A stretch of DNA of 64,000 nucleotides from Oopsacas minuta (GCA_024704765.1 JAKMXF010000354.1:295690-359689); one strand, 5' to 3'; positions 1 to 36,361 are shown, counted from the stretch's first letter. Numbers and translations are program-made. Notes: a model not told the origin generated them from the letters alone.

Positions 1-3000
1 AAAAAGTAGAAATTCAACCCATTAATTGTAACACCGTTAATAATTATGTTCTTAACACGATCAATGACGTCAGAACTCTTAAGCGCCTCTCCGTGTTCTT
101 CTCTGAAAGCTAAATTCAGGAATCTCTCTTTCGGGAATTTCCTATAAAGTCTGTTACGTTGAGTAAATACAGATTGTAGAGGAATTACAGTAGAGGGAGT
201 TACCATAGCACACTCGATGTAGCAATAGTTATCATGAGAAGAGGCTGGGCTAGATAGAGGGTAGTCTTTGAGAGTGTCCAAATATTTATCGAAAGAGCTC
301 TGCAAATCAAAAAAGTAATAAGTTGTATCTTTACATCTCAAGGATAGAAGATAAGAGAATGTTTTAGACAGAGCCCTAATAAGAGATAAATCTGCTACAT
401 AAATCTCCTTAGTAAATTTACGAATAGTTTCTTCAGGTAGACAAATATTTCTTATAGATTTTAATACATAAAATTCCCATAGACAGTCTTGCATTTCTTT
501 ATCCCAGTATAGAGAATTATCTGATAAAATTATTGCCTCAGTCTCCATGGAGGTACACTCAATAATACGTGAATCATATACTGGAACAGATAGAGTATTT
601 GGTGAGTGGAGAAATATCCATAATTTACTCCAATTAGACGTCTTGTATGCAAGTGAGATCCCGAAGACAGGAGACTCTCCGAAGAATCTCAGGAATGAAC
701 AGTTATCACATGACAACATTTCTCCAGATTGAGATAGGACTTTAGGACAGAAGGAAAGAGGTAGGTATAGCATGACGTCATTCTCTCTCCAATCAGCTAG
801 CATAAATAGAAAGATAGAAGCGAATGGAATCTCAATTGTCAACCGAGAATCTGCCTGGTTACGGATAGTTATGTGTATGGTGCGGTCAGATGAGAGTTCA
901 AAAATTCCTTTCTCTCCGAAAGTATTCGCTTCTAATTGCTCAGTTACCTGAAAAGTATGTTTATCGTTAAATTTTCCCCATGAGATCTTATTTACAGTCC
1001 ACTTTGTTTGATATTTCATTTCTTTATCTAGAGGTACTCGAACCCTTGTCCACACCTCAGGACCTCCGTTTCCGATAGAGAATGACCACTGCACAGTCAA
1101 GAGTTTGTAACGCTCATAAATGTTTGGTTTTTGAGTTTGCAAACCCAAATTTAATAGAGAATCTTCGAATGGGAATATTCCATTAGATTTCCAACGAGAA
1201 TTACAAGCAGCTTGTTCAATACGCTTAACTTTCAAGAAATATTTTTCAAATAGAATTTTAGCAATATTATCCTGAATATCGAATAATTCATGTGTTCCTG
1301 TTAAGTAGAATTCGACTGCACATTCTGTCGATGACAATATGTTACATTTCTGACTGTGGTCAGAGCAAGAAACTGTATTTTCAATATCTTTTTGAATATT
1401 TTCTATGATATTTTCTGTGAATGGAGAAGGAAATTTAGTCTCTGAATGGTGTTCTTTTAAAACAGATTTTACAGTATATTCTTGAGCTTGGATTTCTTCA
1501 AATGTACGATTCTCATCTTCAGATAGAATCAAAATAAACCTGCTATTATCCCATTTTCTAGCTCTCCCTTTACTCTGTTTATAAGAAGTTAGAGATTTTA
1601 AGCCATTAAATCTGATAACGACATCACACACAGGGATATCAAGACCTTCTTCCAATACAGACGTGCTAACCAGGAGATTACACTTCCCGTTACGGAAATT
1701 CTCAATTATTTCTTCCTGATCATTAACCCAGTTCATACCAAATGGTCCTGACTGTCCAACTATTTTCAAAGGAGAAAATTTCTGATTAACCTTCTGGTCT
1801 TCCTTCAGAACAGTAGCTAAAATAGAAGCCATACGGCGGGTCTCAACGAATATAATAATTTTAGAATTATCAGAAATTTCATTGAGGATATTAAACAGCT
1901 CTTGTAGTCTTGGAGAGAAGCTCGGCTGATGATCCAATCCCTCAAATATATCCATATCTCGTAGCTTCTGGTGAGCATATGTAACTCCTAACATCTCTGT
2001 AAGATCTAGCATCTTACATATCCTCTTCATGGATGTAACGTATTTATCAATGTCATTGTGATGTAGTTTTAATTCGTATAACATTGTAATCAGCTGACTC
2101 CTGTATTTCGCATCCTTCCAGTCAGTTTTGTTAATCAATTTCTCTTGAGAGCAGTTATTTATGCAACTAGCTAGTTGGTATAATCCTCTTTCTAGAGTTT
2201 CTGAATACTGAGTAATCATATTATTAACCGGTTCTGTGATTATATTCTTTTGAATAGAAGCGTCATCACGTTGGTACTTTTTAATAGACAGAGTATGACA
2301 TATTGGAGCGTTAAAGAAGTTCTGTTTAAACTGTTTTAGTAATTCTATAGTTATTTGAGTCTTTTTCTGTGAAGAAGGAGGAGATGCTGTTAATCCTAGC
2401 ACTCGCGGACGCGATGGTTCACATTCTCTTATTTTGTTAAGAATTGTGACGTAATTATGACTTTTGACAGCATGATGACATTCATCAAATACCACATAGC
2501 AGAAATTATGCAAACCAACTTTATTCTGAATAGCAATATATGCACCAGCTGTTGACACCAATACATCGTAATATCCCTGGTTCAATCTCACATGTTTTAA
2601 TCTAGTATTAGTCTCACTTGTCAAAGTACAGACATTCAAATGAGTGTCAATACTGATAGCTTCTCCCTGTTGGAATACTAATGGGACTCTCTCAACTATA
2701 AATAGCACCATATGGTTTGGATTAAGTTGCTTCATTCTAGCAGCAGCCATGCTTGCTACTAATGTCTTTCCATAGCCAGTAGGCAGAACCAGAATAAAGT
2801 CTCTCTGTAGTGCCTCTATATAAGCTATAGTTTGGTAATCTTTTGGAATTAAATCTGATTTTAATATGTCGTTATATTGGAAGTGAGATTCATCTTCAAT
2901 TTGTGGTAGAATTATTTCTCCGTTGGTATTTTCTGTAGAGAGTTTAATCCTCTTTGAATCACTGGTCACATTTGGTGTCCGTGTATGTCCCAAGAAGCTA

Positions 3001-3344
3001 TCATCATCTCTTAATACAATCTGACTGAAAGGTGCATTTTGATATACTAAACCCCAACGGGTTTTCTTGTCCAATGATTCGCCGTTTATAGTTACCTTAT
3101 CAGCTCCAAATAGCATTATTTCTTCTCTATTCGGACCAATTCCAAGTTTCTTTCCAAGGTAAGCATCGCATTTCAAACATTTTATGATAATCTTATTTTG
3201 CTTCTGCTGATCAATCGTAAATCTTTCTTCTAAGAAGGTAGCAGACTCATATCTAACCATGAGATGAACAGAATTATCTTCTTTGCGGTAGAAGCACAAG
3301 TTTTCTAGCGGAAATTCGTTCTCTTTACAAACTATACAATTCAT
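1..3344 (-). CDS. Zn-binding (RLR-CTD-like) + DExD/H helicase (Dicer/RIG-I type) + eukaryotic RdRP fusion; 3'-partial, continues off the left edge
   Basis: Manual translation from ATG 3344 (in-frame TAG 3 codons upstream) is stop-free to base 3 (1114 codons). N-terminus MNCIVCK...KCLKCDAYLG. Helicase motifs: LPTGYGKT (~2764-2787), DECHH (2472-2486), LGLTASP, IIFVETR, STSVLEEGLDIP, QSKGRAR (~1557-1579). The last codons read MVTPSTV...QRNRLYRKFPKERFLNLAFREEHG...IDRVKNIIINGVTINGLNFYF, matching the entry to the cellular RdRP domain (VTPT...NR..R...FLRV.F.DE...GI.I.GR.Y.FL). Confidence 0.88.
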   Translation of the reverse strand, partial: MNCIVCKENEFPLENLCFYRKEDNSVHLMVRYESATFLEERFTIDQQKQNKIIIKCLKCDAYLGKKLGIGPNREEIMLFGADKVTINGESLDKKTRWGLVYQNAPFSQIVLRDDDSFLGHTRTPNVTSDSKRIKLSTENTNGEIILPQIEDESHFQYNDILKSDLIPKDYQTIAYIEALQRDFILVLPTGYGKTLVASMAAARMKQLNPNHMVLFIVERVPLVFQQGEAISIDTHLNVCTLTSETNTRLKHVRLNQGYYDVLVSTAGAYIAIQNKVGLHNFCYVVFDECHHAVKSHNYVTILNKIRECEPSRPRVLGLTASPPSSQKKTQITIELLKQFKQNFFNAPICHTLSIKKYQRDDASIQKNIITEPVNNMITQYSETLERGLYQLASCINNCSQEKLINKTDWKDAKYRSQLITMLYELKLHHNDIDKYVTSMKRICKMLDLTEMLGVTYAHQKLRDMDIFEGLDHQPSFSPRLQELFNILNEISDNSKIIIFVETRRMASILATVLKEDQKVNQKFSPLKIVGQSGPFGMNWVNDQEEIIENFRNGKCNLLVSTSVLEEGLDIPVCDVVIRFNGLKSLTSYKQSKGRARKWDNSRFILILSEDENRTFEEIQAQEYTVKSVLKEHHSETKFPSPFTENIIENIQKDIENTVSCSDHSQKCNILSSTECAVEFYLTGTHELFDIQDNIAKILFEKYFLKVKRIEQAACNSRWKSNGIFPFEDSLLNLGLQTQKPNIYERYKLLTVQWSFSIGNGGPEVWTRVRVPLDKEMKYQTKWTVNKISWGKFNDKHTFQVTEQLEANTFGEKGIFELSSDRTIHITIRNQADSRLTIEIPFASIFLFMLADWRENDVMLYLPLSFCPKVLSQSGEMLSCDNCSFLRFFGESPVFGISLAYKTSNWSKLWIFLHSPNTLSVPVYDSRIIECTSMETEAIILSDNSLYWDKEMQDCLWEFYVLKSIRNICLPEETIRKFTKEIYVADLSLIRALSKTFSYLLSLRCKDTTYYFFDLQSSFDKYLDTLKDYPLSSPASSHDNYCYIECAMVTPSTVIPLQSVFTQRNRLYRKFPKERFLNLAFREEHGEALKSSDVIDRVKNIIINGVTINGLNFYF

Positions 3345-3732
3345 GGGCACCTAGCTATGAGAATAAATTATATATACAAACGTCATGATGAATTTCTCTA
3401 TTCTTGCTACCAAGGTGTTATAGAAATAAGATCGTACACACGTTACGCTACGAAACACTTTCAAATTTGTTATTAGAATCAAAATACAATTTTCCGTATA
3501 ATTATTAATTGAAAGCTATGGTACAAGGTATTTTCCCTGAACACTGGTTCTCAATCTTGCATCTAAGAATTGGGATTGCAAAGCAAGTCCAAAGAAGCCA
3601 ATTATTACGTACTCTTATAATACGAACGAATTCTGTCGTACCTTACTTACGTATTAAATTATGAATTAACTAAGCCTACTGTATTGACATTTGTTGTGTA
3701 TACTCGTATATTTATATCATAGAGAAGAGATA

Positions 3733-6700
3733 ATGGCAACAGGTTGTCTACACAAATGTTTTCCACTACATCTCCCTCCTCTATTGGAAATCAAAGAAGT
3801 GATAGAAACAGCAATGAAGCCTCAATACAAGGAGCTTAGTGTTGAAGTGTGTGACTGTCCTGATCTTACCCAGATGCCATGGGACATGGCCTGTGGTGGA
3901 CTGGGAGGGGATACAGCTACATTTCACTTTGGAGGTGTACCTTACTTACTGCCTGTACCTGACAAGAGCAAAGTCTACGACATGCAAGAGATTATAAATA
4001 TCACGGGAGTAAAGAATCCGTTTGTTATTGGACCAGGTGCTGCTTCTAGAGAACAAGTGGGAATAAATTCAGAGCTGATTGCTAACCTCAGGGTGGGGGA
4101 GGTTCCTGTCAACAAGTCACGAGCTAGTAAAATTGAGGCTGGGAACTGTAAGCTAGAGATGTATCCGAGTACAAAGACGGGTCCTATCGCAGACCTCTTC
4201 GTGAGTGAGGGAACACCTGGTCCTGTGCTCAAGATACACGCAAAACAACGACTCGGTAAATAAATAATAAAGGCCCTATTAATGAGAAGATTGTTTCAGC
4301 TCCACATGATGTCTACCTAAGCATGCGGGTCGGGCGGCAATTCATTTTAATAATCTCGTTATTTATAGGTTATCATAATACAAAGTGGCCATTTCATAGA
4401 AAATTCTATGACTCAACTTACGAGTAGAAATATGTTAATTAAGTTAAGCGTGTTAAAGGTCTGTGAAGATAAAATCACTGCTATCCCGCTAGTTAGGAAA
4501 TACATTGTGAAAAAAATGGTGGAATGATTACAATAATTCCAATAATAACAATATTCATGGTGGGGCAGATAAACTGTATTCGGGTGGTAGAGCTGAAACA
4601 AGTTTCCAACTTAACATCTCCAATAGTAGCCAGGATGATTATTGACAACTAGCACCTTGGGTTAATGCAAATAATTTTTAAGATACAATCGAGGTATCGT
4701 AAATATGAATACAACGTAGCCAGTATTGCCTCCAAAGTGAATCATCCTGTTTATTCCACAAATTCATTTCCAGATTATATGTACAAGTAATCAACTAAAA
4801 TTACCAATTATCTATGTACAAAATTTTGTTGATATGTTTATACGTTTATTTCCTACTAAGCAAAACATTAGCACATTCAACCCATTTTTTGATGTCCTGG
4901 ATATACGACATGTATTTTTACCCGAATAGATATACGTACGCTACATATATTTATTCGGGTAAATGTTTATGAATTGCATAAACGTGTATATATTTATATC
5001 GCAAGATCCATTTTGAGGCTATTACCCCAATGGGGCACACCCCTGTCTGGATATCTATCATAGAATTACAGTAGATTTAGGATATTATATAACCAATATA
5101 CCTCTAGGACAAACATCACGATATCCAATATCTGTACGTAGCAGATATAGGATATCGCGATATTTTGTCAGTTTCGATATCAATTTTATATGTAGGACAA
5201 TCCTACAACTCTCATAGAGTATTTAGCTACTTGTCCCTAGCAAGTAGAAACCAATTCAAAGTTTAAAATCTATTAAATAATACAATTGCAATTTGTTCCT
5301 TTACTAACTAGTACAGTATTGTAATATAGAAATATAACAACAATAAAGAATATATATATACAATACAGCATTCAATATACAAATATTATCAAATACGTAT
5401 ACAGTTACATCAGGTAGCAAATAGTAATATTATGTAGGGGCGGGTACCGTTGTTAAAAAGTATGCAAGTTGGTTTGGAAATAGTATTAAATTATAAAAAT
5501 GCCTTTGCTACAGAGTCAAAGTCCTCTTAAAACTCCTTGTTGCTACTGAGTCGCGGCAAGTGTGAGAAAGATATTGGTTTGGCGTGCTCGCGAATAGATC
5601 CAGCTGCGTATGATAGACTTGGTCCTAGCTGGGTGTAATCTTTCTTGGATGTAGTCTCCTTCTTAGCGTTATCAAATTCCCCGTATCCGTAATTCTTGTT
5701 TTTCACTTCAAATCGTTGTAAACTTTGAGTAAAGTCTTTCTGTGATGTCTGCATCTGTGAGTAACGTCTGCCCTCGTTATGCGATACCTTGGTCAGATCG
5801 TAGTAGGCGAAATCTTTCTTCGGCTTAGAGGAAGGTACCATTGCTTGAGGAATACAGACAGAATTGTGTCGCAGATAAGCGTCTCTACTCACTTCTAGCT
5901 TATTCTTGCTATCTAACATTTCCTTGTTACTGGACATCTTACCGCATACTATAGGATGTTCATTCATTTTGCTATTACAATCTACTTTACCTGTCTTGAA
6001 GTCATGATAGTCAATCAGTGAGGTATTGAATGGAGCTATGTGTTGCTCTTTAGTGTGGGGGAGACTACTGTGAGAGTATCCAGACAGGACACTAGTGGAC
6101 CCACTTGAGTAGGTGGAGGCAGGAGCTTTGTACTTGGGGAGAGGACGTGTCTTTGCCTTACCGTCTTGTACCCAATCGTGTAGAAGAGCCTCATCGGGTG
6201 TCATCCTGAGGTTAGGATCCCATGTGAGAGCACGTTTAATAAAGTCGATAAATCTGTGATCATCTGTTTTGAGAGCAGTGCCGAGTAGTTTGGTGCTGGG
6301 TTTACGCACCTTCCCCTTGCTGTTTGTCAGCTGTCTGGGGTTGTTACTCTCATCAAAGAACACTCTCTTCCTCTGAGCATCTTCTAGTAGAGCCATGGGA
6401 GGTACACCCATTATTTCCATGATACAAGCTAGCTGTTCGTACTCATCATTACCAGGGAATAGAGGGTAACCGGTGTGAAGTTCCGCGAGAATACAACCGA
6501 AGCTCCACATGTCAATAGGGATACCATATGCTAGACCAAGGATAACCTCAGGAGATCTGTAGAACCTGCTCTGTATGTATGTATAAATCTTCTCCTCTTC
6601 GTAACAGCTGGAGCCGAAATCTATCACTTTTATACTATACTGGTTCCTAGCTCTCAACAATATATTCTCAGGCTTGAGGTCACAGTGGATTATCCTTTCT

Positions 6701-8384
6701 CTATACAACAGCCGTAGACAGTGTAGCATTGATATAGCTAGCTTTCGAACCAAGGATAGAGAGAAACCTTGAAATTGGTTCTTCTTTATCATTTCATATA
6801 GATTGATAGAGAGCAATTCAAACACGATACACAGATGATTACGGAAGTAGAAATGCTCTAACATCTGGATTATGTTATGTGTTCCATCTTTATCTTTTCT
6901 CTTCAAATGATCTAATATTTTAACTTCCACTAGAGCTTGATGATGAAACCGCTTTTTATTCCTGATGACCTTTATCGCCACGTTTATGTGAGCACGATGA
7001 TCATATGCCTTCACTACTTGTCCGAATGAACCCTTGCCAATAGTCTCGAGGGATTCATATCTGTAAGCTATATGGTCGTTAGTTACTTTCCTGTAACTAC
7101 CGTTATCATCATCAAATCCATTATTGAATGGTTTACCAGGCTCAGCCTGTATCTTCTTAGCGTCTCCCCCGAAGAACCAGATCTCAGGATACTTCTCAAC
7201 CTCTTTCTGCTCGTAAGCACTAATCCTGTCTTTATACAGCTTGAGGACTGTAGATGGTGCGTAGGGGAGGCAGATCAAAGTATTGTCAATAGATGAGGTG
7301 GAGAGTTTGTGGAAAGGAGCGGGAGATGTTCTTAGGGGAGTAGGTTGGTGAAGTTGTGGAGCTGTTCTTCCAATCTTACAAAGGTCTGTGTCGCTAGAAG
7401 GAGATTTCTGTGATGGGAGATAAGACGGCTTAGTAGCACAGGGAAACGCTATTGCTCCCGTGCTGTTCTTGGATGGCCTGTTAGATTTCGTGGAAGGTGA
7501 TGTGTCATTTTCGATGGTTCCAGTGGATAGGAGAGGAGGCTTGTAGGATAGTGGATGTCCTCGCTGTATTTCAGGGTACTTAGACTTACTCTGAGAACTG
7601 GAGTAGCTGTTAGAGGCTACAAGTCTAGCGTCATGACTACTGCTATGTCTGTATGGAATACTAGGTCCGTAGTACGTTATTGGTGAGGATATATCTGGGG
7701 GTTTCCCGCCGATACGAACGGGAGAGATACCGCTCTTAGTCTTGTCACTGTTATTCTTGATTCTTAGGATAGAAGGGATGAAACTTCCGCCTGTTTTAGA
7801 TCCTGACTTCCCGCCTGTTTCATAGGACATAATCCTAATTGTTACAAAATAAACTCAAATTAATGAATGAATTAAAGTATAATTACATAACATTGCTTAT
7901 CAATATGTAGTTACTGAGTAGGATTAATTATATGTGCGTAGTGATAACAGTGGATGAATGGAATTCAGCATTTATGTATTGTTATACAGGTAAGGATGAC
8001 TTTATCACTGGAATAAGAAAAGCATTGACAATTCACTACGGGGATAAACCAGTTGGATTAGGCGGGGTATTTCAAATAGTAAATGGAACGGCTAGGCTGC
8101 ACATCATGTCAGAGTTTTGTGATTACCCTCTTGAAACTATGGATAAGATCAACAACTGGTTACAATTCTTTCATATGAAAGCACCTCTCATCTGTTTGAG
8201 TGCTATGGTGAGTTATGACGCAGGAGAGTTCGGGATTCGTCTGGAGCACACACATTGCTTCAGTCATCATGGAGAAGGAGGTCATTACCATTACGACACT
8301 ACCCCTGAAGAGGTTGAGTATTTGGGATATTTCAATCTGGCTAAACAAGTGTTTCAATACGACCAGCCACCTAAGTCCACCTGA
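3733..8384 (+). CDS. C11orf54: Ester hydrolase C11orf54 (DUF1907) homolog; exons 3733-4255 and 7990-8384, 305 aa
   Basis: Two ORF-track fragments join in phase 1 (CTCG|gtaaat ... atacag|GTAAG) to give HAKQRLGKDDFITGIRK. Family motifs VxDCPDLTxxPW, GGVPYLLP and RLEHTHCFSHHGEGGHYHYDTTP are present. Confidence 0.92.
5527..7830 (-). CDS. Class 2 DYRK kinase (closest to DYRK4), intronless, nested in the C11orf54 intron
   Basis: DH box FNNGFDDDNGSY..DHIAYRYE, GKGSFGQV, HCDLKPEN, DFG, YTYIQSRFYRSPEVILG. EQLACIME resembles DYRK4 more than DYRK2. Confidence 0.93.
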   Translation of the reverse strand: MSYETGGKSGSKTGGSFIPSILRIKNNSDKTKSGISPVRIGGKPPDISSPITYYGPSIPYRHSSSHDARLVASNSYSSSQSKSKYPEIQRGHPLSYKPPLLSTGTIENDTSPSTKSNRPSKNSTGAIAFPCATKPSYLPSQKSPSSDTDLCKIGRTAPQLHQPTPLRTSPAPFHKLSTSSIDNTLICLPYAPSTVLKLYKDRISAYEQKEVEKYPEIWFFGGDAKKIQAEPGKPFNNGFDDDNGSYRKVTNDHIAYRYESLETIGKGSFGQVVKAYDHRAHINVAIKVIRNKKRFHHQALVEVKILDHLKRKDKDGTHNIIQMLEHFYFRNHLCIVFELLSINLYEMIKKNQFQGFSLSLVRKLAISMLHCLRLLYRERIIHCDLKPENILLRARNQYSIKVIDFGSSCYEEEKIYTYIQSRFYRSPEVILGLAYGIPIDMWSFGCILAELHTGYPLFPGNDEYEQLACIMEIMGVPPMALLEDAQRKRVFFDESNNPRQLTNSKGKVRKPSTKLLGTALKTDDHRFIDFIKRALTWDPNLRMTPDEALLHDWVQDGKAKTRPLPKYKAPASTYSSGSTSVLSGYSHSSLPHTKEQHIAPFNTSLIDYHDFKTGKVDCNSKMNEHPIVCGKMSSNKEMLDSKNKLEVSRDAYLRHNSVCIPQAMVPSSKPKKDFAYYDLTKVSHNEGRRYSQMQTSQKDFTQSLQRFEVKNKNYGYGEFDNAKKETTSKKDYTQLGPSLSYAAGSIREHAKPISFSHLPRLSSNKEF

Positions 8385-10662
8385 ATTACGATACGATAGT
8401 TTTATAGGACTATTCTAGATTTTTAGTACATATATATGAAACACTCTATATTTATATTTATACTCTGTATGTTATTATGAAATTAGATACATTTGTGTGG
8501 TATAAAAAGCAACATTTGGTTACATAGATATTTATGCAGTAAGGTTGAGGTTGAAGTTGAGGTTGCGGATATATTGAAATTGTTTAGAAGCAGTATTTTA
8601 CCTCATCAACCAAATTGCACGTAGACATTGTCGGTAGGCCAACATTCAATAAATTTATCACCCGTTAGGAAAAATTATAGGATGATGACAAATATAATGA
8701 TTACTTATAGAGAGAGAATGAAAATGTAGTCTCGTGATGTTTAGTGACACATTTTTGTAAAAAATACAGTACTATGTTTAACATCTAATAGCAGTTGATA
8801 GCTTTAAATAGTTTCTCCAAAATGAGCCTTCAATTGAGTTAATGAGAACTAAACATTTTTTGCCAGAGACATTAGTGAATTGAAAGGGTAACATAGACAA
8901 TTCGGAGTGATAATGTAGTTATAACAGATACATGTAGACGTATTGTGCAAGGCATAATATACAAAATATATTGAGCCACCAAATGTTGGTTCGGTTGAAA
9001 CCTGACCGACCGGACCGTCTCCTACCCCTACGGCCATGTAATACTATAATTATAAATACAGTTGAAACTGTATAACGATCATCAAGGGACTGGGCTGGTA
9101 AAATTGGCATGTACTCAATTCAAATATAGTCTGTTATATGGGCTTTAAGATTGTTGGTAACCACATTCTGCTGTAGTACTTAGTTTACGTGTAAGCAACT
9201 GACTTATCAAGAAGTTTCCGGATTTGCACATAATTTGAGATAATAAAGCATGGGTAAAGATTAGTTTGGCTCACGAAACAAGAAAATGGTCAGCAAGCAA
9301 TACATTGAGTATTATTGCATACAATTTTGTGGTCAAATTGCCATATAGTCATATAACTTAAATCACTGATATTATCTCAAACAATAAGATGGTAGATCCT
9401 TTTGTAAGTATTGAAATCATACCTGCCTTGCTGTACATATAACATTATCCTATATCCCTACAACTAGTCATTCTCATTGTTATAGGAAAAATCCAATTTG
9501 TAACAATACTTCAGTTGGAATAGTGAACTTTCTTCAAGGATTTCTGAAAATAATTCATCGTGGAAGTATTGCTAAATAGTAGGCTTCAGTGGTGAGAGCT
9601 CTATAAAGTATACCTCATTTTCTAAAAGGCTATTTCACCAAAAGAAGCAGGAGTAAACACTTGCTCAATATAATCACTTATCTGATATTATATACCAATT
9701 ATTTCTGTTTATATATTATTTGAATTCGCTTGTGTAGCCAGTGACTATTAGTCTTACCACAAGTTAATATACGAGGCCAGCGAATCAACTAAGTCTTGTT
9801 CCATTGTGTAGCTATTGAATTATTAGACAGACAATATAATAATTAAGGTTTGCTAGTTGGAAGTGGACTATCAATACCTTATAAATGTATTGATAATAAA
9901 TATATAAAATTACATTACGTAGTATTATCGTTTGCTTACAGATCTGTAAATATATTTGGTAGAGAAGCTAACTGCATAAATATACGTGAATTGGGAAATA
10001 AATTATCAAATTCGCCATTTCTTTCGAATAATGATAATTGCGATATTTCACAATTTCCTGCGAATATTGAATAGTATTATGCCATAAATTTAATAATAAT
10101 ATACATGTAGAAAGCATATCGTGTAACTTAAGGAGAATTTGTAGGAATCAATTATGATAATTTCATATCGTTTAATTATTGCTCGGTTAACGTGCACAAA
10201 TTGAGTGATTTATAATATTTAAGTCGAATTATCATGCCAAACCACTTCGGCTTAATAGCAAGCTTGTTAAGTAATTATCAAACTATAATAAACTATTATC
10301 AAATGGTTACTATTGTTTACGAATCAATGTTAACAATATTACATTTTTGGTTATAATTTCAAGATAAATAGATAGTAAAATTATTAATTTGTCTGGTCCA
10401 ACCTCTTGGTATATGTCCTAGACAACCTACATGAGTGTAATATGTAGGAGGATGTGATTACATCCAACTCATGTTGTGTAATGTATACAGCACAGATGCA
10501 AACGGGCCCACTCAAATTACAATCTACTTATACCAAACAAGTTTATCCCCTATATGAGAGAACACTTATTGTAAATATTGCTTAGTAACTTCGTTCTCAT
10601 TTTAATTATGTAAACAAATTACCATATATGTATTTCGAATATATCAACATAAATTTAAGCGA

Positions 10663-22740: not shown

Positions 22741-25700
22741 TCAATCAATAGGGAGACTTTCATAAGGGATTTTCATAGAAGCCCCGCCAATTTCTGGACT
22801 TGGAACAGAGATTGAGGTGCTGTAACCAGGATTTGTGATTACTTGAGAATTGTGTTTTTCTTTCTTATTTTGGCTCTGAGCTTGTCTTAACGAGCTCTCA
22901 ATTGTAACAGGTTCAAGTTGAATCGCCAAGAAGTTATTTGCCTCACTACTTTGGTTAGCACTGGGACTCTCGGTGTGTCCTTTCCTGTTTATTCGGAATT
23001 TGAGAGCAGCTGGTGGTTTGTTACTGGTAGGGTTAGAACCAGGATTTGTATTGGAGGCAATTGGAAACGAACTAGCCTGATGAACTGGTTTCCATAGGAA
23101 TACATACATGACAATCTCTGGGGTACGGAACGGATATAGAATTGTAAATATCACCCCTTGTAGCCCCAGTACGATTGTGAATATGAATGCAGTCGCTGGA
23201 GTAGGGACAGAGGCGAACACTGAGAATAACCAGGGAAGACCAAGAAGTGGAGCTAGAATAAATGTAGCGAGTAATACACTACGTAGTTGTACAAATAAAT
23301 TTCCTTTTCCTTTTGAAACTTTGAACAAGACTATAGCTGTAAGAACAAGAGCAACAAAGTTTGCAAGTGTAACTATTACCATCGGTATTATGAAAGCTAG
23401 ACTGACAAATCTTGGCTCATTACTCAACCAGCATACTTCATCAATATCGTCTATGATATATTCGTGTGTAATGGAGGGGGTGATTATCAGAAGTGGGATG
23501 GGCAAGCTCCAGCTAAGAATCACTAAGTAATGCCAGAAACGACGCTCCACCCCCCAAGCAAATATCTTAATAAACAAATATAAACCGATAGAGAAGGATG
23601 CAGTGAACACAGATAGCCAGAAATAGTATTGGATTATAGTCAGAGCAAGGCAAATTGGCCTATTGCTATACGCTCCAGCTGAAAAGATAAAGAATAACAG
23701 AGCTAGCAAGAGAGCTACAGCGAAGTTAAAATGTAGAATCGTAGCATCTTTCTTGAACAAAGAATTAGCTAGCTTTCTAGTCCTGATCCATAGAATGATA
23801 TAAGATACCACTGATATTAATAAAAATATGATAGAGAGCGATCCTAATAAATAGGATAGAATTTCTATGGCGAGATTCTCTTGTGGAGTTAGGTTCAAAG
23901 AAATAGCTGAAACTAACACTGCAAAGTTAGTGAGATGAGATACAGAACATTGAGCTGGACCAGGAAGAACCTGAGGAGAATTGGATAGAGTTGTTCCACT
24001 AGTTATCCACCCTTGTTCAATACTCTGAGTAGAAACACAAGAGTATGATATGGCAAACTTAATACTGTTATCTAACAGAGGAGGATCAAATAACAAACCG
24101 AATGATAACAATATATCTTCATTCAATTGTTCTACCATTCCTATTCCTCGTGTGAATATATTCAGATTTGAGATAGCTGTAGCAATAGAATCATTAATAC
24201 TCGTCTCTCTGGCAGTCCGACTAACAACGGCATCTACTTCTCCAAGTAACAGAGATAAACTCGGAAAGACAGAAAAGCTAACCTCAACTCCATCACCAGC
24301 ATCATTAGCCCGTACAACATTAGCAGGAATAGATACTGATGCTTGTCCTCGTGACAGAGCAGACTGATCACCAATAGAAGCAGGGCCAATGAACACTGCA
24401 TCAACAGGATCACTCACAACAGCAACAACAAGTGCTACATTCCTCTCTTCAATCAAAACACTAGAATTGACAGGGATTACTGAACCAAGCAGTTGACCAA
24501 GTTCCTCAACAGTGGTTACTATACTCGATATTTCAGTTTCAGTCTGTGTCTGTGGAGATTCTAAGAAAGCTATTCTATTCTCACTCCTGAATACATTAGA
24601 AGCAATAAGGACTATGTTATCTTGTACTTGAGCTAGAGTGTTAATAAGCTCATTCCCAGTAAGATTCATCAGAGAATCTCTAATAGCTTCTAACGAGGAT
24701 ACAGTTTGCATAATCTCGCCAGGATATAGAACCCCACTAGTAGCTGATGCTAGCTGTATTGATTGTATTATACTCTCTTCTGGTGTAAATGGGCCCTGAC
24801 CATTGTTTTGTAGAGACAGGAAGGAAGCACTTAAACAGTTTTGATAATTTGTTTCTTCTCTAATACCAGCAATATTGCATCGTTTGGAAATTGTGCCAAA
24901 CAGAGTGCTGTCTAGTTGTGTGCAGGGTATTATCGAATCGGAGTCCAGGGGTGTCGCCGGGAAGGTCAAGTCAATACCAAACTCATTTGACTCTGTAAAA
25001 GAAGCACACACAGAGTTAGATATTGTTGAAATATTGCATGTCCTTCCTCCAAAGAATGGATCACAATCACATACGTAGTTTTCAGGTGGAAGTAGATTAA
25101 TGCATATACCGTTAACACAATTGTCTGGTAAATTACATTCGTCAATATCAACACACTGCCCGTTTATTCTGGTGTAACCGTTGAAGCAGATACAACTATA
25201 ACTTCCCTCTGTATTCACACAAGCTGAGTTTGTACATGGATTAGGGTCAGCACTACATTCATTGATATCCGCACAGGTTATGCCATTGAATTCATAACCA
25301 CTAAGGCAATCACAGAAAAAGGAATTGTTCGAAAACCCTTCTGAACACATTCCTAAACTCCCACAGGGTTGTTGTGATGAGCAGATCGATGAAGTAATAG
25401 GAAGAGGATTGAATGCTAACTGTGGATTACTTCTTACGCATCGTTCTGGTCCGGGATGTAAACGTGTAGGATCGTAATTGAAGTACAAGTATACTTCATA
25501 TTCTGTCAGAGATTGCAGAGGTTCAATAGAGTAGAATCCTAACTGACATGCAACAACTATACTAGCATCAAACTGAGTGGAGTAGGTGAATGATATCGTA
25601 GAATCAACACAAAAGGATGAAGTTATATCCCAATAAATTTGGATAGAACTAGATGTCACATTGTATGTTAGGTTTAGAGATTCTAATAGAGTATAAATCG

Positions 25701-28700
25701 CACTAAGCCTTGAACCAGCCTCTGGTCTATATGCTCTCAGACCTCCGCTGTATATAGCTTCAACAAAGAAGTTATAGTCTAAGAGTGGAAATAATTCGAT
25801 ACTACCCTCAAGTGAAGAAGAAGATTCCTCACAGAAATAAAAGTTCGATGTATCACTAGGACATATATCAATCTGAAGGCCACTAGTGATAAGGGGAGAT
25901 ATAGGCCTACCTAGAAAGCAGCCTGGAAATATGAACACCGGACATTCTTCAGTCATGCTAAATGTTGTGGAAGATGGCAGAGCATACAGTGTATAAGACT
26001 CAAACTGTTGTGCGATAGGAATCAAGGGAGAACTGGTCCATTCTACTTGATATACGTTTGAACTTAAGTTAGTTGGAAGTAGAAAGTCAGTTATAAAGGG
26101 AGCAGCTGCTTCAGGGAGAAAAGAAAATACACCTCTAGTAGAGATAGCTATGTGAGTAGGATCAAAGAAATTTAGTACAAAGTTGGATCCTGGAAACTGT
26201 ATTGGTTGATATGGGAAGATGAATAGCACTACTGGATCTGTGTTATTTGGCATTTCTAACAGAGCGGAGCTGTTGAAACAAGATTGAACTCTAAATATTT
26301 TGCTTATTACATTATCATCACTGTAATGAAATACAGTCCTACTGCCGTTGGTACAAATCTGAGAATCGTATTGGAAGAAGAAAGTTCTTGCAAATCCAGA
26401 GATCGATATTAAATCCAGAATGAAATCATCCGGGTATACAGAATCAGAAGTGTGATAAAAGGTAGCACCTTGTAGCTCGTAAACAACAACAAATTTGTAT
26501 TCATAGCCGGGTATAATGTTAAGAACTGCATTATCGAGGGTTGTAGTAAGTATGGAACATGTTAGTTCAGCACTACCATTAAGACAGTATTGGTATAAAG
26601 TTTCTATAGGGAATTCTAGCGACTGGGTAAAGTCTAAAGGGAAGGGAAGTAGACTTGTAGAATACACTGAGTTTATTTGATCAGTGAATGCAGTGACACC
26701 TGTCGGTATTCCCATTAAAGTATAAGAGGATACTCCAGGAACAATATTCCATTTAACTTGTACATTGGCGAAATCTAAAATTTTAACTTCCTGAATGAAA
26801 TCAGGTGTTGTTACTTCATTAAAGGAGATTTGGAATGTTGGGCAAGATGAGATGAATGTATTTGAATTGAAGAATATTTCTGCATCGATACAATAGGTAT
26901 TCGAATAATTAAGATTATTGATTACATATGAACCTACTACACATTCCAAAATGACTATCTTGTAGCTAGGAGAGAGTGGGGTATCTCTCCTTCTCCTAAG
27001 CTGAGGGGGAGGTGTCGTAATAAATGGGAATTCAATTGAGGGGTTACATTGATCCCAATAAAGATAAATATACGAGTCAGGCGGACAGTAGAAGTCAGTA
27101 TCCCATTCTACAAGAACACTTGTATTAGAGATGAGCTGTACGCTTGTATAGAGGAGTGACTGTTCATTGATAAGATCGGGATCATTAAGATTGGGAATAC
27201 CGTCAAGAGCAGACTCAAATATTCTAACACTGTTTGATGAATTCACACGAATAGCATGATCGAATCCTGGGAGAACATTAACAACAAGATTAAGAGTCCT
27301 CTCAACAGTTATGCAAGTATAATTGGACGTATTCTCACAAGGAAGGAGAGGCATGTCTACCAAGCTAAAAAATTGTATAGGTGACGGGGTTAGATTGATG
27401 AGTTCAGTATCATTAGTGATATTCGGACACTGAGTAATATTGTTCAATTGGAATTGATTGACTCGGTAGGGTAGGAAATATATAGTTGCAGGTTGATCGA
27501 ATACTCCGTTGATAGCAATGCTTAGAGAAATGGTGTTGTAATTGAGATATGTAAATTCTAGTACAGTACTAGATGGGAATGCTCCAAATCTAGAGATTTG
27601 GTTAGATTCGAAACCGCTTAAGCATGTGCTACCATCTGTAGTTACCGTATCAGTGAATATATAACCGTATGTGTCGAAAGCAGGTGGAACGACTGTCAAC
27701 AAAGTGGGAGTAGATTCACAGGAAATAATTTTATTCCCAAAAAATAGCGATGCAAAAGGAAAATTTTCAACTGACGAACGGAGAACTAAAGTATTCTCAA
27801 ACACTCTGAAAAAAGTGAAAGAGATGGGTAAGCAGAGATTACTACTCCAAGAGGCTTCCTGATAGCTAAGTCCTTCTATTCTTCCGAAACTGATATCTAA
27901 TGCTGAGTATATTGCTGGATAGCTCTGTACCTTAGTTAATATACCAGTCGCCGCGTTCAGTAGTACAGCTTCTACGATTATACCGACAGCATAAGTAGAA
28001 TCAATTGGAACAATCAGCTGTGTATGGTTGCTAAACAAAGAATAGCATTGATAGGGAAGAGAGGCACCGGAAATGAGAGGACATGAGAGATCAAACTGCT
28101 GAGGAGCATTAACACCGTAATTATAATATTCAGTAGGAAATAGGCTGAATTCTTCTGCATGTGTTTCTGAATCCAAATTGTTACAAGAACTGCCGTTATA
28201 CCTCAGAGCATATACAGGGAAGATATACACGTTAAAATAGTCATCAGGAGTGACTACAATTGTTGACCAATCAATTGCAATGTTTTCATCAAAGCTACTT
28301 ATTGATCGGATAACAGGGATATCTATATTCTGAATAAAACCCCCAAATGCTTCTAATGTAATCCTAGTGTATCCACATGTGTTGTCAGGGATAAGATTTG
28401 ATGGGGAAATAAATCGAATATCTGTGTATACGTACACCAACTCATTAAATTCAGGAGTTGGTATGTACAGATAAACAAAATCACCTCCACACAAAGTATC
28501 GGAATCTATTTCGATATTGTGTAAGAATTTCCCCAAAATGGATTCTGTGTAATGGATTGTCATTCTATGCTGTTCACAAAAACTGATGTCAGGGGTAATC
28601 CAGCTCAATAGGACTCTATTTCCAATTGCGAAAGGAAACGAAGAGTTATCAAGAATAAAATTATCATAATTTTCCTCAACAAAACCATTACTAAAAACTG

Positions 28701-29898
28701 TCAACCTCAAAAAGTCTGCATAAAACTCAGATATCAACAAACTATTGCAGGAATCCATGAGTATGGTTATATCAGTGTAGATTGTTTGGATACAAATAAA
28801 CTGATCTACTCCCACGAATATGTCTACAAGCAAACTCAGATCACTCGTAACATAGCAGAGATAATCACTCGAATTTTCACAAGGAAGAGATTCGTTGATA
28901 TTCAATCTAAAGTACATTGTGTTCAACTGTACTGCATAGCCAGGAGGGTACTCACAACTTCCATGATAATAATCAACTTTCTTAGCATAAATGAATACTT
29001 GATAATACACTGAATCGCTTGGACGGAGGTTAAATGGAGCAGAGAAAAAAACATTTGCTTGTTCGTAACCAAAAGGAGAAACGAAAACCGATAATGTATT
29101 AACACCCCAATCAGACAGAGAGAATTGTTTGAGTACAGCGATGGATAAAAAGTCAGAAGTGAGACTTAGATAATTTCCGAAAACATCTGAAAAGCTACCG
29201 CCTGAAAGCATAAGGACACAAGGACATATATCGTTAAATACAGACACCTCAGTTACGGTAAGAAGAATTGTATAAGTCTCAGAAGCTAAGCCAGTTTCAA
29301 TAGTAAATACTCCATTGGTGAGATTTGATATCTGAATAGATTGATCCGCGGACTCGATGGAACTTCCAGAATTGTTAAAGGAATCAAGAATAATGGGTTC
29401 ATTAAAGATAAACATTAGCGTCCCCAATAGTAAATCAATTTCTACTCTAGTCAATAGAGGAGGAGTTGTATCAGGGATAACATTTAGCTGAATAGGTACC
29501 GATAGGATGGGAGAGATTTGTAGGAAAGTTGATTCGGAGCTGGTGAGACATTCAATACTAGGATTATTGCTGATAAACAACTTTATTTCTGTGGAATTAG
29601 ATGGAGTTAGTATAAATGTATGTACAAATGAAGTTACAGGTTCGAATATGAAAGACAAAGATGGAAAAGTACAATTAGAGCTAAAGTTTGCGTCATTGGA
29701 AAGTGTAAAATCCTGGCCTAAGAAGCATAAACCATTTACTGATTCATTGAATGCGAGGATGATACTGATGCTTGCGCCCTCAAACGAGAGAGAAGTATTC
29801 TCGTTAACAATAGAAGATGGTAGAAGATCGAAAGCAAGGGGACCACGAATGGATGTGGATAATACAACGAATATAAATAATGCTATGAGAGTTCCCAT
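22741..29898 (-). CDS. Adhesion GPCR 1 (2385 aa): signal peptide, FN3/Ig-like ectodomain, EGF-Ca repeats, HormR-like, GAIN/GPS, 7TM
   Basis: EGF-Ca DINECSADPNPC and DIDECNLPDNC; GPS CSVSHLTNFAVL; secretin-class 7TM (LHFNFAVALL, YYFWLSVF, CWL, LLGLPWLF). Coding region intronless. Confidence 0.93.
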   Translation of the reverse strand: MGTLIALFIFVVLSTSIRGPLAFDLLPSSIVNENTSLSFEGASISIILAFNESVNGLCFLGQDFTLSNDANFSSNCTFPSLSFIFEPVTSFVHTFILTPSNSTEIKLFISNNPSIECLTSSESTFLQISPILSVPIQLNVIPDTTPPLLTRVEIDLLLGTLMFIFNEPIILDSFNNSGSSIESADQSIQISNLTNGVFTIETGLASETYTILLTVTEVSVFNDICPCVLMLSGGSFSDVFGNYLSLTSDFLSIAVLKQFSLSDWGVNTLSVFVSPFGYEQANVFFSAPFNLRPSDSVYYQVFIYAKKVDYYHGSCEYPPGYAVQLNTMYFRLNINESLPCENSSDYLCYVTSDLSLLVDIFVGVDQFICIQTIYTDITILMDSCNSLLISEFYADFLRLTVFSNGFVEENYDNFILDNSSFPFAIGNRVLLSWITPDISFCEQHRMTIHYTESILGKFLHNIEIDSDTLCGGDFVYLYIPTPEFNELVYVYTDIRFISPSNLIPDNTCGYTRITLEAFGGFIQNIDIPVIRSISSFDENIAIDWSTIVVTPDDYFNVYIFPVYALRYNGSSCNNLDSETHAEEFSLFPTEYYNYGVNAPQQFDLSCPLISGASLPYQCYSLFSNHTQLIVPIDSTYAVGIIVEAVLLNAATGILTKVQSYPAIYSALDISFGRIEGLSYQEASWSSNLCLPISFTFFRVFENTLVLRSSVENFPFASLFFGNKIISCESTPTLLTVVPPAFDTYGYIFTDTVTTDGSTCLSGFESNQISRFGAFPSSTVLEFTYLNYNTISLSIAINGVFDQPATIYFLPYRVNQFQLNNITQCPNITNDTELINLTPSPIQFFSLVDMPLLPCENTSNYTCITVERTLNLVVNVLPGFDHAIRVNSSNSVRIFESALDGIPNLNDPDLINEQSLLYTSVQLISNTSVLVEWDTDFYCPPDSYIYLYWDQCNPSIEFPFITTPPPQLRRRRDTPLSPSYKIVILECVVGSYVINNLNYSNTYCIDAEIFFNSNTFISSCPTFQISFNEVTTPDFIQEVKILDFANVQVKWNIVPGVSSYTLMGIPTGVTAFTDQINSVYSTSLLPFPLDFTQSLEFPIETLYQYCLNGSAELTCSILTTTLDNAVLNIIPGYEYKFVVVYELQGATFYHTSDSVYPDDFILDLISISGFARTFFFQYDSQICTNGSRTVFHYSDDNVISKIFRVQSCFNSSALLEMPNNTDPVVLFIFPYQPIQFPGSNFVLNFFDPTHIAISTRGVFSFLPEAAAPFITDFLLPTNLSSNVYQVEWTSSPLIPIAQQFESYTLYALPSSTTFSMTEECPVFIFPGCFLGRPISPLITSGLQIDICPSDTSNFYFCEESSSSLEGSIELFPLLDYNFFVEAIYSGGLRAYRPEAGSRLSAIYTLLESLNLTYNVTSSSIQIYWDITSSFCVDSTISFTYSTQFDASIVVACQLGFYSIEPLQSLTEYEVYLYFNYDPTRLHPGPERCVRSNPQLAFNPLPITSSICSSQQPCGSLGMCSEGFSNNSFFCDCLSGYEFNGITCADINECSADPNPCTNSACVNTEGSYSCICFNGYTRINGQCVDIDECNLPDNCVNGICINLLPPENYVCDCDPFFGGRTCNISTISNSVCASFTESNEFGIDLTFPATPLDSDSIIPCTQLDSTLFGTISKRCNIAGIREETNYQNCLSASFLSLQNNGQGPFTPEESIIQSIQLASATSGVLYPGEIMQTVSSLEAIRDSLMNLTGNELINTLAQVQDNIVLIASNVFRSENRIAFLESPQTQTETEISSIVTTVEELGQLLGSVIPVNSSVLIEERNVALVVAVVSDPVDAVFIGPASIGDQSALSRGQASVSIPANVVRANDAGDGVEVSFSVFPSLSLLLGEVDAVVSRTARETSINDSIATAISNLNIFTRGIGMVEQLNEDILLSFGLLFDPPLLDNSIKFAISYSCVSTQSIEQGWITSGTTLSNSPQVLPGPAQCSVSHLTNFAVLVSAISLNLTPQENLAIEILSYLLGSLSIIFLLISVVSYIILWIRTRKLANSLFKKDATILHFNFAVALLLALLFFIFSAGAYSNRPICLALTIIQYYFWLSVFTASFSIGLYLFIKIFAWGVERRFWHYLVILSWSLPIPLLIITPSITHEYIIDDIDEVCWLSNEPRFVSLAFIIPMVIVTLANFVALVLTAIVLFKVSKGKGNLFVQLRSVLLATFILAPLLGLPWLFSVFASVPTPATAFIFTIVLGLQGVIFTILYPFRTPEIVMYVFLWKPVHQASSFPIASNTNPGSNPTSNKPPAALKFRINRKGHTESPSANQSSEANNFLAIQLEPVTIESSLRQAQSQNKKEKHNSQVITNPGYSTSISVPSPEIGGASMKIPYESLPID

Positions 29899-34684: not shown

Positions 34685-36361
34685 TTAAAATAGTGCTATA
34701 GTACTTGTATTCAGTTCAAGTGTAGCTCCAAGGCCATTATGCAGGACTGCATATTCACTTCTAGCAATTTGTGCAAGAGATGGAATCTTGTTTTCTAATG
34801 GATCAAATCTTTTTAATATTTCCTTTAGGACACGAGTAATGCAATGATATGATTTGTAATTCCAAGACAAGATGACTAGATACCCATATAGACCCTCACG
34901 TAAACACAGTTCGATATTTTTTACATCCATAAATGTAGCAGACACGATAGTAACAGCCATATGCAGATAACTATCCATCAAACCTCTACTGTATTTAAAT
35001 TTCCACAACGGAGCTGATTGGGGAATAAATAGCATATCAATGAATGGGAGAATTGTACCCCAGGAGGTTCCTCTCAGCTTCTCTCGCTCTGCTATGTCAA
35101 CAGCAGAAGTACAGTTTCTTTGTTGTTGAAATTTAATTTTGAAGTAACCAGGTGAGTAACCGGTTGGAAGATCAAAGGTAGGGTTACGTAAGAGAGCCAT
35201 GTAGAACATAATCAGCCCGTATGCTATATCTGAATCTGCGTTTAGAAAGAAATCTAACCTCTCCAACTTGTTACTAAGTTTCTGTACAATTCCAGCTTTC
35301 ATCATCACCAATGGAACGTTTGGATGGCTTGCCAGAGTGAATAGAAGTGTGCTAGTTATACTCATAGCAAATCTATTGGGTGTCTTAGTGAAATAGTCCA
35401 CGAGTTTCGTCAAGAATTTCTGACTGGTCCCCAGGAACTTCTGTCCAGCGGGAAACTCACCAAATCCAGCTAACAATCCAACACATCCATATTTTATTTC
35501 TGTTGTGGCTTTGGTAGAAATAAAGCGGTCAAGAGCTAGTATGTGAACCTTCTTATTCATAAGTAGAACCCTCTCTTCAAGGTTCTCTCCATAATCCCAC
35601 AACATAAGCATACAAGAGACAGCCAAGTTTTCATAAATTTCTTGATCTGCCCATTCCCATATTTCGATCACTCTATCGATCACTCCTTCATTTGTCAAGT
35701 ATAGTCTATGACAGGTGGTAGCTTCGTCTCTCCAAGGAAGTAGGACACGTTCATACATATAATCCATACTTTGCTTAAGTTCATCTACGTCATCAATGAG
35801 TTCAATATCTGTGATGGGTGGAGGCGGGGATTCAGTAGATTTTATCTTTGGGGGGTTGATATGCTTGTTGTAGAATGCTGTTATCTTATTAGCGTGCTCA
35901 AGGACCAATGGAAATCTGTCAGAACAAGAACGTCCGAAATAAATTAATTGGAGCTGATCTCCCCCTCTGAGAGAGACATCCTGAGAAAGAGATTGGTAGT
36001 CAAACAGTATCATCTCTTTGACAGACAGCTGTAGTTGACAGATGATAGGAATCTGTAATTTGTCAGAGATGAGTTGTTTCAGATCTCTAACTGTTTCTGG
36101 GAGTTCTTCTATACGCAATAGCTTATTGTGCCTACGTTCTGTGTATTCACAGTAACACTGTAGCGTTAGAGTAGTTGGTAAGCGGAGTCTGCAGCGTATT
36201 CGAGGAGGGGAAACATGGAAGGGAATGAATTGTGGACAGGATATTTGGTTAATTTTCTGTTGTTTGATTTCACCGGCGTATTGTAGTGATTGACTGATAG
36301 TGGAATTTCGTAAAGAACGTTTCCTACTATTACTTACAGTCATTTGCATAGTATCAATCAA
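34685..36361 (-). CDS. Uncharacterised 558-aa protein: ubiquitin-like segment, ARM-like helical region, C-terminal BC-box-like motif
   Basis: Intact intronless ORF. ETVRDLKQLISDKLQIP..QLQL...L.D..SL...LRGGDQLQL fits a UBL pattern; terminal IPSLAQIAR. Confidence 0.75.
   Translation of the reverse strand: MIDTMQMTVSNSRKRSLRNSTISQSLQYAGEIKQQKINQISCPQFIPFHVSPPRIRCRLRLPTTLTLQCYCEYTERRHNKLLRIEELPETVRDLKQLISDKLQIPIICQLQLSVKEMILFDYQSLSQDVSLRGGDQLQLIYFGRSCSDRFPLVLEHANKITAFYNKHINPPKIKSTESPPPPITDIELIDDVDELKQSMDYMYERVLLPWRDEATTCHRLYLTNEGVIDRVIEIWEWADQEIYENLAVSCMLMLWDYGENLEERVLLMNKKVHILALDRFISTKATTEIKYGCVGLLAGFGEFPAGQKFLGTSQKFLTKLVDYFTKTPNRFAMSITSTLLFTLASHPNVPLVMMKAGIVQKLSNKLERLDFFLNADSDIAYGLIMFYMALLRNPTFDLPTGYSPGYFKIKFQQQRNCTSAVDIAEREKLRGTSWGTILPFIDMLFIPQSAPLWKFKYSRGLMDSYLHMAVTIVSATFMDVKNIELCLREGLYGYLVILSWNYKSYHCITRVLKEILKRFDPLENKIPSLAQIARSEYAVLHNGLGATLELNTSTIALF

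Follow-up and report, generated by a model that had tools for sequence, protein, structure and literature searches.

What is encoded by the long minus-strand frame that leaves the left edge of this stretch of Oopsacas minuta DNA, and what could its product do? The stretch (GCA_024704765.1, JAKMXF010000354.1:295690-359689), called the window below, was analyzed at its full length of 64,000 nucleotides. The early-branching animal supposed from the sequence in the initial annotation is indeed its host: O. minuta is a glass sponge (hexactinellid), and a paralogue of the gene described below, from the same assembly, bears this species name at NCBI. The frame is the 5' part of an intact single-exon gene of this sponge. 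Its product is predicted to join four modules in one chain, namely an N-terminal zinc domain resembling the C-terminal domain (CTD) of RIG-I-like receptors (RLRs), a DECH-box helicase of superfamily 2 (SF2), a complete cellular RNA-dependent RNA polymerase (RdRP), plus a terminal nucleotidyltransferase of the Cid1 family. With moderate confidence, this protein can be read as an RNA-directed RNA polymerase complex (RDRC) contained in one chain, which would yield double-stranded RNA (dsRNA) or small RNAs for silencing of the RNA interference (RNAi) type. What had been observed in the initial annotation was confirmed, and its interpretation is supported in part only.

Gene structure and extent

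Translation of positions 1-3344 bears out the uninterrupted minus-strand frame of at least 1,114 codons that had been described: it begins with ATG at 3344, runs to position 3 without a stop and exits at the left window edge. The probability of a stop-free run of 1,114 codons is ~10^-34 at the base composition of the window, and the plus strand of 1-3344 contains no open reading frame (ORF) of 80 or more residues. The frame was correctly noted as missing from the ORF list, since that listing leaves out ORFs running off the ends of the source. The ATG occupies 3342..3344 and is preceded by an in-frame TAG three codons upstream (3353-3351). The position of the start agrees with the aligned N-termini, 18 of 23 of which have M-x-C directly at this place and two more after one extra residue.

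When the contig was extended leftwards, the same frame was found to continue to 2,606 codons in one exon with no internal stop (contig locus L001; coordinates are converted as window = 13345 - L001). There are 0 mismatches between L001 and the window across their 13,344-nt overlap. The full-length protein from the window's own genome (P0035) came up in a further search that used a full-length relative as its query, and it agrees with the window ORF at 1114/1114 residues. The window holds the 5' 43% of the gene (residues 1-1114 of 2,606; 1..3344, minus strand), and the remainder lies to the left of it (L001 13345-17821). The GC content of the gene (0.354) is close to that of the window (0.363), so the gene is compositionally native. 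A 388-bp intergenic region (3345..3732) shared with a divergent DUF1907 gene, as delimited by gene calls on L001, presumably contains the promoter. All module coordinates given below refer to the minus strand.

RNA polymerase module

The entry motif of the cellular RdRP domain had been placed at the window edge, and it is found there. Residues 1048-1114 (3..203), the first 67 of the catalytic domain, match PF05183 at positions 1-75 of 582 with 26.3 bits vs a cutoff of 23.8; this score belongs to the 100-residue end piece scanned alone and becomes 22.2 bits within a 474-residue piece. In P0035 the match to this hidden Markov model is nearly complete (residues 1048-1631, model positions 1-580 of 582, E 1.7e-106), and the catalytic DxDGD motif is present in the same frame as DLDGD at residues 1472-1476, outside the window at L001 14414-14428. 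By these signatures the fused chain is predicted to contain a complete cellular RdRP with an intact catalytic signature. The frame thus neither stops soon after the edge nor lacks the RdRP match, two outcomes that the initial annotation had named as refuting it.

The ~400-residue linker described between helicase and polymerase proved to be a linker over part of its length only. Comparison by hhalign of the family profile of residues 640-1050 with the N-termini of 13 unfused animal RdRPs gave a match of 98.8% probability (E 5.4e-17, 292 columns). Because of this match, residues ~740-1047 (204..1127), i.e. about 310 residues, are assigned to the ordinary N-terminal accessory region of eukaryotic RdRPs. 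Residues 641-739 (1128..1424) fall outside the match and are a spacer that separates the helicase from the RdRP module, which with its accessory region spans residues 740 to ~1810. The same family profile (residues 640-1050) found no match in the PDB. HicB matches of residues 641-1114 in a phmmer search against the PDB (E ~0.2) were rejected as spurious.

Helicase module

The helicase motifs DECHH, LGLTASP and QSKGRAR reported in the initial annotation are all present in the frame and belong to a helicase of the Dicer/RIG-I type. According to Pfam and to phmmer against the PDB, the DECH-box SF2 helicase of the Dicer/RLR/Hef group covers residues 163-640 (1425..2858) and divides into Hel1 (2355-2858), an insert located where Hel2i would lie (1920-2354), and Hel2 with the segment that comes after it (1425-1919). 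Its motifs are motif I GYGKT at residue 190 (2763-2777), motif II DECHH at residue 287 (2472-2486), motif III LGLTASP at residue 316 (2379-2399) and motif VI QSKGRAR at residue 590 (1557-1577). Pfam detects DEAD/ResIII at residues 170-327 and Helicase_C at residues 482-595. The best match in the PDB is the AncD1D2 Dicer helicase (2.3e-43), aligned in a single stretch over residues 163-630 and followed by LGP2 (9e-30), DCL1, Hef, human Dicer, MDA5 and RIG-I. The similarity to DRH-3/DRH-1 (~51 bits) is weaker than that to Dicer or LGP2. The insert comprises 145 residues (331-475), and the alignment with AncD1D2 spans it with weak similarity there.

Despite this kinship the protein is neither a Dicer nor an RLR. 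The Pfam scan of P0035 revealed no RNase III, PAZ or Dicer dimerisation domain, which excludes a Dicer; true Dicers retrieved in the search that returned P0035 carry PF00636, PF02170 and PF03368. Neither the window protein nor P0035 gave a CARD match when scanned with Pfam, and this, together with the permuted domain order described below, excludes an RLR. An Enterotoxin_a match inside the helicase core (2493-2669, residues 226-284; E 0.14, 12.2 bits vs a cutoff of 21) is noise.

C-terminal nucleotidyltransferase and tail

The protein had been described as a single-chain sensor-polymerase of two modules. The one-frame fusion of helicase and RdRP stood, and the two-module picture did not, as a nucleotidyltransferase and a zinc domain have to be added at its two ends. 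The Cid1-family terminal nucleotidyltransferase occupies residues ~1850-2200 of P0035, outside the window. In full-length relatives the MTPAP-like/NTP_transf_2 palm models of Pfam match ~200 residues past the RdRP domain, and their curated cutoff of 27 bits is exceeded in several of them, with scores of 27.4 (P0002), 41.2 (P0009), 44.6 (P0016), 41.5 (P0052) and 34.2 bits (P0055). In P0035 the motif FGSVSKFLCELESDLDI at residue 1863 fits the pattern hG[GS]x9-13Dh[DE]h, and the third carboxylate is D1952. Across 23 aligned C-terminal regions, Gly1864, Ser1865, Asp1876, Asp1878 and Asp1952 are invariant. The best solved relatives of the transferase profile are the terminal uridylyltransferase MEAT1, CutA, GLD-2, Cid1, Tailor and mtPAP.

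The AlphaFold model of residues 1773-2606 has a mean pLDDT (predicted local distance difference test) of 79. Searched with Foldseek, it has 140 matches at E<=0.001; these are with enzymes of the Cid1 family, extend over 300-430 columns and include Cid1, TUT7, MEAT1, CutA, GLD-2, URT1, TUT1 and mtPAP (E 1e-5 to 6e-7, probability 1.0). The hG[GS]…DxD…D signature and the two-domain fold are shared with the Cid1 family (Cid1, TUT4/7, GLD-2, MEAT1, URT1, mtPAP). The sponge enzyme differs in its position C-terminal to an RdRP and in being followed by a conserved tail of ~400 residues. This tail (residues 2203-2606; L001 16607-17818) is 67-70% identical between orthologues, contains invariant H, W, Q, P, G and Y as well as the consensus motif KTRFGxFY, and is predicted in the AlphaFold model to form alpha/beta plus beta-rich domains. 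By sequence it has no relative in the PDB or Pfam.

N-terminal zinc domain

The first 120 residues (2985..3344) are predicted, from the alignment, the AlphaFold model and Foldseek, to form a four-cysteine zinc "beta-tent" domain. Its two CxxC pairs (3327-3338 and 3168-3179) are made by Cys3, Cys6, Cys56 and Cys59, which are near-invariant in an alignment of 23 sequences, and the model of residues 1-120 has a pLDDT >90. The leading 23 Foldseek matches of this model are all RLR CTDs, and the top three are the CTD of C. elegans DRH-3 with 5'-triphosphate RNA (6m6r/6m6s; probability 1.0, template modeling score 0.47-0.50). The best matches of the modeled domain thus suggest that residues 1-120 resemble the RNA-end-binding CTD of RLRs. 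Residues 121-162 (2859..2984) form a poorly conserved spacer (12-60% identity) which is predicted to be disordered (pLDDT ~50 at residues 121-140).

The same assignment is reached by sequence in homologous domains of relatives. The Pfam model RIG-I_C-RD (PF11648; curated cutoff 25.6 bits) scores above its cutoff in P0101 from Acropora (32.1 bits), P0093 (32.8 bits), whose RdRP domain is 61% identical to that of Nematostella, and the EukProt protein P0142 (27.4 bits), and it gives sub-threshold, near-full-length matches of 18-20 bits in the Bryopsis, Brachionus, Rhopilema and Nematostella copies.

The RIG-I_C-RD domain is usually treated as animal-specific. An RLR-CTD-like domain, a DECH helicase and an RdRP are found together in Effrenium voratum (P0009, P0024, P0025), in Bryopsis (P0118, P0123) and in the EukProt protein P0142, so the domain may be older than animals. 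A motif scan located the nucleotidyltransferase motif in P0009 of Effrenium and P0118 of Bryopsis, but not in P0123 or P0142.

Conservation and phylogeny of the family

An exhaustive HMMER search with residues 641-1114 gave 21 relatives, the best of which are 2,570-2,660 residues long and align at the same offset. According to regular-expression scans, ~40 full-length relatives have retained, almost throughout, the CxxC pairs, motifs I, II and VI of the helicase, DLDGD and the motif of the transferase. Identity between orthologues is 54-78% in every module, tail included. O. minuta itself has at least three paralogues of the fused gene. In another assembly the locus L004 has the neighbors Ank-SH3, two DUF1907 genes, MGAT4 and a bromodomain gene in common with the window locus; the same neighbors and the same single-exon structure identify its fused gene as an orthologue. 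The architecture, the intact signatures of three enzymes, the purifying constraint and the synteny are direct observations. At L004 a FLYWCH+MULE transposase-derived gene (8346-9620, minus strand) stands directly upstream of the fused gene, and the kinase of the window locus is missing.

Fused members were found in the cnidarians Nematostella, Acropora, Montipora, Dendronephthya, Stylophora, Desmophyllum and Rhopilema, the rotifer Brachionus, the ulvophyte green algae Bryopsis and Ostreobium, the fungal relative Paramicrosporidium and the dinoflagellate Effrenium. In Acropora millepora, P0100 and P0101 (LOC114966061/62) have consecutive locus numbers and the longest contig of each has 21,761,158 bases, which suggests a tandem duplication.

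A tree of the RdRP domain was calculated for 45 sequences, none of them from Dictyostelium or oomycetes (IQ-TREE, with support from the Shimodaira-Hasegawa-like approximate likelihood-ratio test, SH-aLRT). The window gene belongs to a clade of 14 sponge-like sequences, where "sponge-like" means synteny for P0036 and otherwise grouping with the three O. minuta paralogues in the tree. This clade lies inside a long-stemmed, fully supported clade together with Rhopilema, Effrenium and others. The anthozoan and green-algal fused genes group with unfused animal RdRPs, apart from the sponge genes. On the RdRP tree there are three groups of fused genes, and no fewer than three changes are required to account for the fused state. 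Such a scattered pattern may reflect either ancient paralogy with losses or horizontal transfer. No relative was found among the 2.9 million viral contigs of IMG/VR, which leaves a viral origin or vector unsupported.

Comparison with known systems

The RDRC of S. pombe is composed of Rdp1, Hrr1 and Cid12, and that of Tetrahymena of Rdr1 and Rdn1/Rdn2. The sponge protein has in common with them an RdRP, a helicase and a Cid1-family transferase, which are covalently linked in its single ORF and are separate subunits in the yeast and ciliate complexes. In C. elegans, RRF-1 and EGO-1 have the Dicer-related helicase DRH-3 as a partner, and templates are marked by the transferase RDE-3/MUT-2. This set is close to the sponge modules, as it has a helicase of the Dicer/RLR group, the CTD of DRH-3 that the sponge zinc domain resembles, and a Cid1-type transferase. 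It differs in that the CTD of DRH-3 comes after the helicase and that of the sponge before it, and in that the worm components are separate genes. Like the RLRs (RIG-I, MDA5, LGP2) and the Dicer helicase, the sponge protein has a DECH-box helicase, with an insert located where they have Hel2i, and like the RLRs it also has a four-cysteine CTD-type domain. Unlike these proteins it has no CARDs, RNase III or PAZ, its domain order is permuted, and it is fused to two polymerases.

The fusion of helicase and RdRP is an already published architecture. It was described for Dictyostelium in 2002, and the order DEAD-helicase, Helicase_C, RdRP was reported in 2016 also for peronosporomycete oomycetes and the cnidarians Hydra and Nematostella (Bollmann et al. 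2016, PMC4791657). In that work the RdRP-linked helicases form a clade apart from Dicer helicases (PMC4791657). Dictyostelium RrpA, RrpB and RrpC and the oomycete, Hydra and Nematostella enzymes have the N-terminal DEAD/ResIII and Helicase_C followed by PF05183, as in the sponge, and the motifs GxGKT, DE[C/A/V]H and DxDGD are kept. The Nematostella protein LOC5511133 (P0055) has all four modules of the window protein. The sponge genes are distinguished from the anthozoan fused RdRPs by their separate long-stemmed clade.

The published helicase-RdRP descriptions consulted make no mention of sponges, of an N-terminal RLR-CTD-like domain or of a nucleotidyltransferase, with the exception of one preprint, whose figure legend indicates a PAP_NTPase domain in two amoebozoan RdRPs. 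No open-access paper was found on the sponge genes (Oopsacas with RdRP), on an RLR-CTD-like domain in fused RdRPs (PF11648 with PF05183), or on a helicase-RdRP-transferase fusion or a single-chain RDRC. The helicase-RdRP fusion is known, and the full four-module architecture is under-described. As to sponges in general, Porifera are listed among the RdRP-bearing phyla (PMC6085071), and the demosponge Amphimedon was reported to be without any RdRP (PMC6211395).

Possible function and alternative explanations

If the sponge protein acts as an RDRC in one chain, the work of its modules can be proposed as follows. An RNA end would be bound by the zinc domain; by analogy with the CTD of DRH-3, this end may plausibly be the 5'-triphosphate of RdRP products. 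The helicase would use ATP to move along the template-product duplex or to remodel it, and the RdRP would make complementary RNA from the target transcript. Untemplated nucleotides would be put on the 3' end of either template or product by the nucleotidyltransferase. The resulting dsRNA or small RNAs would serve RNAi-type silencing of transposons, viruses or genes. The helicase-RdRPs of Dictyostelium are reported to act in RNAi and retrotransposon control (PMC3661229, PMC7192593), and poly(I:C) induces RdRP1-3 in Nematostella (PMC8476169).

Several points weigh against this assignment. The transferase of P0035 itself reaches 18.7 bits vs a Pfam cutoff of 27, and the top Foldseek matches of the C-terminal model include RESC1/2, which have a nucleotidyltransferase-like fold. 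The Foldseek E-values of the zinc domain are modest (best 5.6e-3), and in Pfam the domain of the window protein gives only Yippee-Mis18 (E 0.12, not significant); its sequence appears to be too divergent for Pfam detection. Hrr1 of the S. pombe RDRC belongs to another helicase family than the Dicer/RLR type, so the parallel with the RDRC is one of composition and not a subunit-by-subunit homology. The function is inferred from the component families. Moreover, in Nematostella, which has four RdRps, no secondary small interfering RNAs (siRNAs) were detected after injection of dsRNA (PMC12768352), and Pinzón et al. argue that the function of animal RdRPs is labile (PMC6396948).

Could the protein rather be a dedicated antiviral sensor-amplifier, in which the helicase and the CTD-like domain detect viral dsRNA or 5'-triphosphate RNA and the fused RdRP amplifies siRNAs? 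An RLR-type CTD-like domain stands beside a Dicer/RLR-type helicase, the best structural match of the former is the CTD of DRH-3 bound to 5'-triphosphate RNA, and RdRP1-3 of Nematostella are induced by poly(I:C), a dsRNA mimic (PMC8476169). However, the CTD-like domain is N-terminal to the helicase and not C-terminal as in RLRs, no CARD or other signaling domain was found in the Pfam scans, the conserved nucleotidyltransferase would be left unexplained, and the sponge gene has no observed tie to infection. The Nematostella injection result counts here as well, and it also touches the RdRP-amplified RNAi or antiviral defense proposed in the initial annotation, which was inferred rather than observed: Nematostella is the host of a fused relative. 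We regard a dedicated antiviral device as quite unlikely.

Doubtful to much the same degree is a TRAMP-like machine for RNA surveillance or tailing with no RNAi amplification, in which the RdRP would produce dsRNA or have a non-RNAi role, or some modules would serve as scaffold only. In composition, a zinc domain, an SF2 helicase and a non-canonical poly(A)/(U) polymerase do resemble TRAMP. The lack of detectable amplification in Nematostella and the lability argued for animal RdRPs would fit such a machine, as would the RESC1/2 pseudo-transferase folds at the top of the Foldseek matches. On the other hand, the catalytic residues of the three enzymes are invariant or near-invariant in ~40 sequences from distant eukaryotes, which disfavors scaffold-only modules, and in RNAi the RdRPs of fission yeast, Tetrahymena and C. 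elegans have as their known partners precisely a helicase and a transferase of the Cid1 type.

It is extremely improbable that the gene is an artifact of assembly or annotation in which neighboring genes were fused, a pseudogene, a contaminant, or the cargo of a virus or transposon. In favor of such origins, the family is very patchily distributed (sponge, jellyfish, dinoflagellate, green algae) and a MULE/FLYWCH transposase-derived gene adjoins the orthologue. Against them, the uninterrupted 2,606-codon frame lies on a 1.1-Mb contig amid animal-type genes, more than 40 independent sequences repeat its architecture and length, the synteny is kept in a second genome, the GC content is native and the viral contigs hold no relative. 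Artifact, pseudogene and mobile-element explanations are effectively ruled out.

Implications of a proposed single-chain polymerase complex

The assignment as a one-chain RDRC would make the sponge gene a natural "Rosetta-stone" fusion, in which three activities that are separate subunits in fission yeast, ciliates and nematodes are combined with an RLR-type RNA-end-binding domain. The covalent fusion gives independent support for the idea that RdRP, Dicer-related helicase and 3' tailing are functionally coupled, and one polypeptide is suited to the study of this coupling by biochemistry and cryo-electron microscopy. Intact, multi-copy helicase-RdRP genes are now documented in a glass sponge; set against the RdRP-less Amphimedon, they broaden the view of RNA silencing near the root of the animal tree.

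A testable idea is also raised on the origin of the RLR sensor module. The sponge protein might stand for an ancient, pan-eukaryotic and self-sufficient one-chain silencing amplifier, in which RNA ends are sensed and RNA is unwound, copied and tailed, and the animal RLRs and DRH helicases could descend from the N-terminal half of such an RdRP. Zinc CTD and DECH-box helicase would have been paired before animals arose, as members from green algae, a dinoflagellate and other non-animals have the same zinc domain; P0142, which exceeds the RIG-I_C-RD cutoff, groups with the green-algal members. We put this forward as a tentative and rather unlikely scenario.

Genomic neighborhood in the window

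The neighborhood of the fused gene is of animal type, with two adhesion G-protein-coupled receptors (GPCRs), Ank-SH3, a protein kinase and P450. Two DUF1907 genes (3733-4263 and 7974-8384, both plus strand) flank a gene for a Ser/Thr kinase of 767 residues (5527-7830, minus strand). The adhesion GPCRs are single-ORF genes of 2,385 residues (22741-29898, minus strand) and 2,429 residues (43039-50328, plus strand). Both contain EGF_CA and 7tm_2, the first also GAIN, and they are paralogues with 35% identity over essentially the whole length. An ORF of 558 residues at 34685-36361 (minus strand) has no Pfam match at E<=0.001. Another ORF, of 493 residues (59727-61208, minus strand), carries an endonuclease/exonuclease/phosphatase domain.

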